From sequence record MT135025.1: DNA of 64,000 nucleotides. One strand, given 5' to 3'. Below, piece after piece: positions 18,835-47,204 of this stretch (its first letter is position 1; each line of letters opens with the position of its first letter). The notes beneath the pieces were generated by a model that had not been told where the DNA came from, searched no databases, and worked only from the letters and a program-made list of their open reading frames with translations. The position numbers and the translations under genes are program-made.

Positions 18835-18863
18835 GGGTGAGATTGATTTCTCACCCTTTTTTT
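18835..18863 (+). terminator. Intrinsic terminator after gene 12B
   Basis: GGGTGAGA-TTGATT-TCTCACCC-T7. Confidence 0.85.
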
Positions 18864-18888
18864 GTATGAGCGAAGCGGTAGAATGGAC

Positions 18889-18966
18889 GAGGCGGAAAAA
18901 TTCCGCATCATCTTAGTAGAATTAGTGGTTTTAGTGAAGTTAGAGATATTAGTATGATTAGTATTA
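18889..18966 (+). repeat. Dispersed non-coding element, copy 1: hairpin plus six 9-nt-spaced TTAG units
   Basis: 39 nt (18889-18927) are identical to the reverse complement of 47125-47163. TTAG occurs at 18913, 18922, 18931, 18940, 18949 and 18958. Confidence 0.9.
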
Positions 18967-18974
18967 AATACTTG

Positions 18975-19003
18975 TTTAAATCCATGAATGTACCTGCTAT
19001 TAT
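18975..19003 (+). promoter_or_regulatory. sigma70-type promoter directly after repeat copy 1
   Basis: TTTAAA-17 nt-TATTAT with a TGn extended -10. Confidence 0.55.
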
Positions 19004-19044: not shown

Positions 19045-19052
19045 TATAAATA
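19045..19052 (+). promoter_or_regulatory. Late promoter for wac
   Basis: TATAAATA. Confidence 0.9.
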
Positions 19053-47059: not shown

Positions 47060-47088
47060 AGTATACATATCAAACGGGTTTTTGTAAA
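47060..47088 (-). promoter_or_regulatory. sigma70-type uvsY promoter abutting repeat copy 2
   Basis: (GTG)TTTACA-17 nt-TATACT on the minus strand. Confidence 0.8.
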
Positions 47089-47090
47089 CA

Positions 47091-47163
47091 CGAATCTCAC
47101 TAATACTTCTAATATCACTAAAAGCACTAATTCTACTAAGATGATGCGGAATTTTTCCGCCTC
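47091..47163 (-). repeat. Dispersed non-coding element, copy 2: hairpin plus 9-nt-spaced TTAG units
   Basis: Minus strand GAGGCGGAAAAATTCCGCATCATC TTAGTAGAA TTAGTGCTT TTAGTGATA TTAGAAGTA TTAGTGAGA TTCG. Aligns without gaps to copy 1. Confidence 0.9.
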
Positions 47164-47182
47164 TTACCTTTGCTTCGCGTAT

Positions 47183-47204
47183 AAAAAAAGCCCCGAAGGG
47201 CTTT
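47183..47204 (-). terminator. Intrinsic terminator after gene 35
   Basis: Minus strand AAAGCCC-TTCG-GGGCTTTTTTT. Confidence 0.9.

Follow-up and report, generated by a model that had tools for sequence, protein, structure and literature searches.

KVP40-like Vibrio phages carry, at six places in each complete genome, a conserved non-coding module of ~100 nt that joins two small hairpins to an array of 9-nt TTAG repeats. Strong selection acts on the whole element, and its reading is strand-specific. From sequence comparison, our preferred though tentative explanation is that it may act in these phages as a strand-specific cis module of the origin type, used for unwinding or priming. We observed its anatomy, copy number and orientation, its conservation, its low duplex stability, the covariation within its hairpin, and its presence in bacterial islands, some of which carry clamp or clamp-loader genes.

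The stretch of DNA analysed, hereafter the window, comprises positions 1-64000 of Vibrio phage V07 (MT135025.1), which is KVP40-like and shares 99% identity with KVP40 in the regions compared. The records of V05, V07 and V09 (MT135024-MT135026) are 157, 349 and 244 kb long, and those of their relatives are about 245 kb. The odd lengths and the strand arrangement of V05 are likely to be assembly artefacts, and the source record of the window is likely to be reliable mainly for local sequence.

Anatomy of the element

The window contains two copies of the element on opposite strands (Table 1). The pair reported by the first-pass annotation is real: it forms an inverted repeat (18882-18965 and 47087-47170; 84 nt, 86% complementary) that is by far the longest repeat of the 64 kb window. 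A stretch of 39 nt, running from the hairpin to the second TTAG unit, is identical in both copies. TTAG recurs at exact 9-nt spacing, from 18913 in copy 1 and from 47139 downwards in copy 2, and a four-unit TTAG pattern (≤1 mismatch) matches solely these two copies, with an expected number of 0.00 from 100 shuffles. The GCGAAGC motifs, the AAA-loop hairpins and the promoter-like hexamers all lie where they had been placed, and the annotated neighbours are those that had been named (12-2 then wac, 35 then uvsY); matches to sigma70-like hexamers are, taken singly, no rarer than chance. A terminator had also been claimed upstream of each copy. That of copy 1 was recovered by a scan, and that of copy 2 can be read from the letters and is absent from the scan list.

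Table 1. Coordinates of the two copies and their surroundings in the window
Feature	Position	Strand	Basis
Intrinsic terminator of gene 12-2, upstream of copy 1	18835..18863	+	Scan (8-pair stem, T run); annotation
GCGAAGC, copy 1	18870..18876	+	Read from sequence
9-bp hairpin, copy 1, AAA loop, one G.A mismatch	arms 18889-18897, 18901-18909	+	Sequence, folding, pair counts
Array, copy 1: six 9-nt TTAG units, zero C, 76% A+T	18913..18966	+	Pattern scan, unit alignment, stability
Sigma70-like promoter TTTAAA-17-TATTAT, downstream of copy 1	18975..19003	+	Scan; relatives by eye
T4-type late promoter box TATAAATA before wac (ATG 19092)	19045..19052	+	Outside repeat; sequence and annotation
Intrinsic terminator of gene 35, upstream of copy 2: short GC stem, TTCG loop, T run	47183..47204	-	By reading; annotation
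GCGAAGC, copy 2	47172..47178	-	Read from sequence
9-bp hairpin, copy 2, AAA loop	47143..47163	-	Sequence, pair counts
Array, copy 2: five TTAG units and a sixth, TTCG; 70% A+T	47086..47139	-	Pattern scan, unit alignment, stability
Sigma70-like promoter TTTACA-17-TATACT, abutting the copy 2 array; uvsY ATG 47039	47060..47088	-	Scan, sequence, annotation

On the sense strand, the order is often the terminator of the upstream gene, GCGAAGC, a spacer of 9-16 nt, a 9-bp hairpin with an AAA loop, CATC, and the array. The terminator part differs between copies. Most phage copies have GCGAAGC ahead of the hairpin; at two loci it falls within the last codons of the upstream ORF. The sequence forms a very stable DNA mini-hairpin, reported at priming sites of phages and plasmids, and its RNA counterpart is much weaker (PMC13037366). 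Because KVP40 has 60 GCGAAGC sites, mostly in coding sequence on the sense strand, the motif alone is not diagnostic.

Across 34 copies, 88.5% of hairpin cells are paired. Two adjacent pairs show a double compensatory change from GC to CG, a variant that probably had a single origin and spread later, and the G.U and U.G (G.T) wobbles allow pairing solely on the sense strand. Set beside single-strand initiation signals, the element has hairpin motifs, and has them on one strand. The 3′ arm of the hairpin exists in two versions that are swapped between genomes at the same locus, which shows gene conversion among copies.

Of 26 phage arrays, 19 have six units; the range is four to seven, and unit number varies by 9-nt steps. 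The unit consensus is TTAG-W-R-R-W-W, with a TTAG core conserved at 99-100% and a period of exactly 9 nt, so that the element has evenly spaced direct repeats with a conserved core, as iteron arrays do. The first-pass annotation had described the bases between the TTAG units as diverging while TTAG and its spacing were kept; the conservation of core and spacing holds, and the free divergence does not, as the units are conserved position by position. Phage spacers contain 148 G versus 14 C, against a background of 22.6% G and 19.6% C. The two arrays of the window are 70-76% A+T (window, 57%), are the least stable 54-mers within 400 nt on either side, and belong to the least stable 0.17% and 0.8% of all 54-mers in the window. 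Each thus offers an A+T-rich, easily unwound tract of ~50 bp like those of T4-type R-loop origins. The view that the element is a conserved, selected non-coding module is borne out. A coding role was rejected: TAG recurs in one frame, the other frames lack a conserved ORF, and start codons differ between copies. We regard the short hypothetical proteins annotated over the element in some records as artefacts.

Six copies in KVP40-like phages

A 108-nt query matched 292 places in 51 records, all of them KVP40-like Vibrio phages (Schizotequatrovirus, and nt-1 of Mylasvirus), and none in other phage records. The element had initially been described from two copies, with a search for further ones proposed; across the KVP40-like records, the count is six per complete genome. 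In KVP40 the sites are KVP40.0061/nrdH, the position after KVP40.0135, KVP40.0251/0252, genes 3/1, 12-2/wac, and 35/uvsY. All six copies share the orientation of their flanking genes, as would be expected if the sense strand or a sense RNA counts. The element is ~90% identical across phages, and the flanking genes only about 80%. Our collection of 28 phage copies was drawn from V07, KVP40, VH7D, VS1, nt-1, F86, K566, D483, 1.081.O and one metagenomic relative.

In IMG/VR, the specific pattern matched KVP40 and VH7D alone. Generic matches to the TTAG period in the same resource were set aside as unrelated tandem repeats, mostly from giant-virus bins. The plasmid collection yielded no match to the element. 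A host origin was also rejected: the strict pattern found no true copy of the element in 185,579 species-representative genomes, and the islands described below were reached via a metagenome match and then via a protein. Literature searches returned no description of a hairpin-plus-array element and, outside the 2003 KVP40 genome paper, none of transcript mapping or origins in KVP40-like phages.

Two further occurrences were recorded. In phage 1.081.O, the whole element is tandemly duplicated ~165 nt apart between gene 3 and gene 1 (401-680 of the fetched locus L141), and the hairpin of the second tandem copy has two wobble pairs. Metagenome contigs Ga0302167, Ga0302209 and Ga0302162, which belong to an unrelated family, carry a TTAG-rich array whose first 17 bases equal those of the phage array and which is irregularly spaced and lacks a hairpin.

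An intrinsic terminator stands upstream of four of the six KVP40 copies. None is found at the 79-kb and 129-kb loci, where the element is therefore transcribed inside an operon. A sigma70-like promoter follows the array at five of the six loci, after gaps of 2, 2, 13, about 25 and about 28 nt, and at four (nrdH, gene 1, wac and uvsY) a stem-loop is followed by a sigma70-like promoter, a Shine-Dalgarno sequence and a start. Three of the six loci are early-type promoters within late-gene blocks, one of them at uvsY beside 34-35. By eye, both hexamers of the wac-side promoter hold their position in nt-1, F86, K566 and the metagenomic relative while the spacer between them changes, and we take this promoter as real because its hexamers are kept in divergent relatives. 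It lies ~40 nt upstream of the wac late promoter (Table 1), which suggests that wac, or a short leader RNA, may be transcribed before late times too. No good -35 lies upstream of the phage copies, so that these do not show the T4 oriF and oriG layout of a promoter that reads into an unwinding element. As the adjacent phage promoter is downstream and points away, the array is not its R-loop region.

At the 129-kb type of locus there is no promoter in five lineages (KVP40, VH7D, VS1, D483 and nt-1), and in each of these the last unit holds a Shine-Dalgarno sequence and adjoins the start codon. At this promoterless locus nt-1 has a different downstream gene, and its homology to KVP40 breaks off precisely where the array ends. 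Homology between KVP40 and D48x likewise stops at the array. The element is thus associated with exchange borders between related phages. Past the 79-kb copy (KVP40 ~79376-79900), the RefSeq table lists no gene for ~690 nt. A start codon and a good promoter (TTGACA-17-TACTAT) follow this copy, and the region may contain an unannotated ORF.

The suggestion that recombination between the two copies would invert the head-tail block was not upheld, with inversion junctions at the element in none of the genomes. The wac and uvsY loci are on opposite strands in 18 of the 19 genomes listed and on the same strand in V05; since both V05 junctions are intact, the element is not the V05 breakpoint.

Related arrays in Vibrio and Photobacterium islands

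Two contigs from one metagenome scan carry the module and nothing else KVP40-like at the DNA level. In one of these, Thoeris and a PstI-type restriction-modification system are accompanied by an unnamed 382-aa protein that is preceded by ~22-nt iterons, and the module and iterons of this contig lie within one 800-nt non-coding region. Homologues of the 382-aa protein occur on chromosomal contigs of many Vibrio species and Photobacterium. Eleven island loci were fetched via this protein, nine of which carry the array (seven distinct arrays); the seven distinct arrays and the two contigs give nine array-bearing islands or island-like contigs. The islands belong to a family of ~12 kb, exemplified by that of V. 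alginolyticus GCA_049394175.1 (locus L158, 4600-17300), with a conserved gene of 325-386 aa; the further loci are L159-L163, L166-L169, L145 and L146.

Identity to phage arrays is 88-95% in the nine array-bearing loci fetched and 89-95% in the nine distinct islands or contigs. The V. cyclitrophicus array most resembles that of phage F86, whose host clade is related, and the arrays of the V. alginolyticus and V. parahaemolyticus types most resemble those of KVP40. In all nine, the array lies upstream of the unnamed conserved gene and is co-oriented with it; iterons precede this gene in seven of the nine, in six copies in five of those. GCGAAGC occurs upstream of every island array, with further GCGAAGC and CCGAAGG on the same strand. 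Across the hairpin position, all nine have TTGGAM or ATGGAC, 16-17 nt, and YATCAT or TCTCAT. In seven of them this promoter scores 9-10 of 12 against the sigma70 consensus and its predicted RNA start is the first TTAG unit; the other two score 6-7. Three of the seven strong-promoter islands have lost the hairpin and kept the promoter. In one 21-kb island locus, the array is the least stable 54-mer of the whole locus.

The islands also carry a large serine recombinase and a small resolvase. The cargo beside the conserved gene varies: it may be a clamp loader resembling gp44, a gp45-like sliding clamp that shares 44% identity with that of KVP40, the Thoeris system, or genes of unknown type. Two related islands lack the array and have other iterons together with VapE-like and AAA genes. 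The conserved protein had no match in Pfam, PADLOC, NCBIfam or PDB, and a fold search with its AlphaFold model (pLDDT 60) was empty. The iteron sequence shifts in step with the variant of the adjacent protein (L146 3082-3223; L167 3638-3763; L169 3415-3552), which supports the conserved protein as a putative iteron-binding initiator. A candidate binder of the array was considered in KVP40.0297 (191 aa, specific to the KVP40 clade; L005 11014-11589), the N-terminal 70 residues of which resemble a conserved 77-aa island protein (L160 7182-7415, phrog_15749). It was set aside as a weak candidate, having few relatives and a phage homologue that one source labels with a transmembrane helix.

Viewed as possible satellites, the islands present a large serine recombinase, iterons and a conserved gene, phage-derived gp44 or gp45 homologues and the cis module. 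They look like an undescribed family of satellites or defence islands tied to KVP40-like phages. We found no published description of them, and PICMI satellites are a different family.

Candidate roles of the element

In the origin-type explanation that we prefer, two small hairpins on the transcribed-sense strand precede a 54-nt, near-C-free and A+T-rich array of six units, which would be the site of duplex opening. The hairpins would fold on the displaced sense strand and hold it open, and the open region would be single-stranded DNA or an RNA-DNA hybrid with sense RNA. A phage replication factor would read this region sequence-specifically and load the T4-type replisome, and islands would use the module to have themselves copied by the machinery of the infecting phage. 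That the duplex opens, that priming and factor binding take place and that any replication occurs is what we infer from several observations. Among phage records, the six copies are confined to KVP40-like phages, the hairpin is kept by compensatory change and sense-only wobbles, GCGAAGC is of a kind reported at priming sites, and the arrays are local minima of duplex stability. Three loci combine early-type promoters with late-gene blocks, which resembles T4. In the islands, the module lies in the iteron and putative initiator region as the only DNA of the locus that resembles the phage and, in the seven with a high-scoring promoter, reproduces the layout of T4 oriF and oriG. Some array-bearing islands encode gp45 or gp44 homologues, and the two array-less ones have VapE-like and AAA genes instead, a link between array and cargo that is based on about ten loci.

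T4 provides the closest known origins. It has ori(uvsY) and ori(34), and its early synthesis mostly begins in late-gene regions; oriF and oriG consist of a promoter and then an unwinding element, for which no specific sequence is required, and the origins have been reported without a common motif, one known iteron cluster being without a settled role (PMC3016281). The element resembles T4 R-loop origins in its size of ~100 bp, its easily melted A+T-rich tract, its occurrence several times per genome and often in late-gene blocks, the copy at uvsY beside 34-35, and the promoter directly before the array in most island copies. Unlike them, it is one highly conserved module that recurs six times, no MotA-type box was seen in it, and in phage copies the visible promoter is downstream and faces away. 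The earlier idea of a promoter R-loop origin as in T4 agrees with the promoter-then-array layout of the islands and is not supported by the direction of the phage promoters. With the T4 iteron cluster, the element shares even, short direct repeats that are kept in relatives, an early promoter nearby and no proven role; its 9-nt rather than 12-nt period, its six dispersed copies rather than one locus, and its attached hairpins set the two apart by description.

Other origins offer partial likenesses. The complementary-strand origin of phage G4 and RSF1010 ssiA likewise have stable GAA-loop hairpins on one strand by an unstructured tract, and islands have CCGAAGG besides GCGAAGC as such hairpins. 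Those sites, unlike the element, serve single-stranded genomes or plasmid strands with known primases (PMC13037366), and GCGAAGC is also common in KVP40 coding DNA. As in iteron-plasmid origins, the island array melts more easily than any other tract of its non-coding region, which also holds about six 22-nt iterons before a conserved gene. The array differs in lying ~500 nt from the iterons, in not being the island's own iteron, and in being common to phages that lack the island conserved gene. Of the earlier proposal of two iteron-bearing origins, the origin-type role remains plausible, given the stability minimum, the iteron and initiator region of the islands, and their promoter-array layout, and the count of two does not.

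We hold the origin-type reading tentatively because it has serious weak points in the promoters, the terminators, the sequence-independence of T4 unwinding elements and a translation leader. Phage arrays lack a good incoming promoter, and four stand behind intrinsic terminators; with terminators upstream and the promoter facing away, an R-loop of the oriF type is unsupported in the phage itself. As the array is conserved unit by unit, whereas T4 unwinding elements are sequence-free, something more specific must be read. At one locus, in five lineages, the array is a leader and ribosome-binding region. Islands might keep the module merely as homology to a six-copy phage sequence, and the island gene on the iteron side has no recognisable fold. 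Even so, the module is important enough that islands linked to T4-type replication proteins retain it almost unchanged where their origin lies. A narrower proposal takes it as a sequence-specific signal for replication start in Schizotequatrovirus and Mylasvirus, mimicked by Vibrio and Photobacterium islands that have a T4-type clamp or clamp loader of their own and would thereby be copied by the infecting replisome; this is possible but on balance doubtful.

Among alternatives, which need not be mutually exclusive with an origin-type role or with one another, it is rather unlikely that the array is bound as duplex by an oligomeric phage or host regulator of the downstream early-type promoter. 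The promoters of nrdH-24-55, of the gene after KVP40.0135, and of gene 1, wac and uvsY would then form a special class, and islands would borrow the array to sense infection. Small oligomeric repressors are known to bind runs of short direct repeats placed ahead of promoters, and a promoter 2 to ~28 nt past the array at five loci, the positional conservation of the wac hexamers and the co-orientation with transcription all agree with such control. However, the distance from array to -35 varies, one locus is promoterless in all five lineages, and the 9-bp period is not in helical phase. Duplex binding would also leave hairpin covariation and sense-strand wobbles unexplained, and in islands the promoter precedes the array and none lies close downstream. 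Most other predicted early promoters of these phages, as listed for PeSLs, lack the element (PMC4122927). The wobble pairs and the sense orientation of every copy would suit an RNA element, in which a stem-loop and a C-free track, (UUAG plus five bases) x 6, would be bound by a protein or serve as a ribosome landing site and so set stability or translation. The 79-kb and 129-kb loci, transcribed within operons and without upstream terminators, fit this, as do the Shine-Dalgarno sequence in the last unit at the 129-kb type of locus and the island promoters, most of which would place the array at the 5′ end of the RNA. In Bacillus, the ring proteins TRAP and HutP read spaced UAG/GAG triplets. 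We nevertheless consider such a role improbable. Four of six copies lie behind a terminator and ahead of a promoter, so that most transcripts of neighbouring genes would lack the element. Rfam 15 gave nothing near the gathering score (best E-value 1.3, from unrelated eukaryotic families), the sense-RNA fold of the whole element is no better than that of shuffles (z = -1.0), a candidate binder is not known, and GCGAAGC is a DNA-type hairpin (PMC13037366).

The closest published description is that of PeSLs, a stem-loop terminator and a sigma70-like early promoter described for nt-1 and KVP40 (Arbiol 2010; Comeau 2014, PMC4122927). As described there, PeSLs are likewise multi-copy, lie at gene-block borders and are tied to indels and the exchange of modules. 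Their number is far larger than that of the six-copy element, and the description has no hairpin-plus-9-nt array between stem-loop and promoter. Two of the six loci, moreover, have no terminator and one no promoter. The PeSL description covers the terminator-promoter setting and not the array insert, the six-copy distribution or the island copies. The element could in principle be a recombination cassette of this kind, a multi-copy homology at gene-block borders with no separate reader, which would drive gene conversion, let co-infecting phages swap modules, and promote exchange with islands, to which it could give a homology handle. The mobile regulatory cassette suggested by the first-pass annotation has support here: gene conversion exchanges hairpin-arm variants among copies, and the homology of KVP40 with nt-1 or D48x stops exactly at the array. 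The tandem duplication in 1.081.O, the 9-nt steps in unit count and the terminator-and-promoter setting, which matches that of PeSLs (PMC4122927), point the same way. Homology alone needs no covarying hairpin, strict 9-nt period or fixed orientation, and it explains neither the avoidance of C nor an element more conserved than its flanking genes. With no inversion between oppositely oriented copies, and with no such array in PeSLs as published (PMC4122927), we regard a cassette without a reader as distinctly improbable. T4 origins, for their part, have been reported as recombination hotspots. A site for the small terminase subunit, where packaging would start and which islands would mimic, is very improbable. 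Arrays of short phased repeats are packaging sites in some other phages. T4-type packaging is described as sequence-independent, however, the six sites face both genome directions, none lies near terminase genes, and hairpin covariation and the origin-region context in islands would be unaccounted for. That satellites often mimic packaging sites (PMC10803314) is in favour of such a site.

If the element is a sequence-specific start signal that the islands mimic, it would be the first origin motif shared within any T4-type phage, and in the islands T4-type phages would have their first satellites or parasites. A conserved six-copy module would give a defined sequence at which to map replication, unwinding or factor binding. 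Should its role prove to be in regulation or recombination, the element still marks precisely where modules meet in these genomes. Its presence in islands with clamp or clamp-loader genes points to an undescribed interplay between large virulent Vibrio phages and the mobile elements of their hosts, which matters for phage ecology and for employing these broad-host-range phages in aquaculture.
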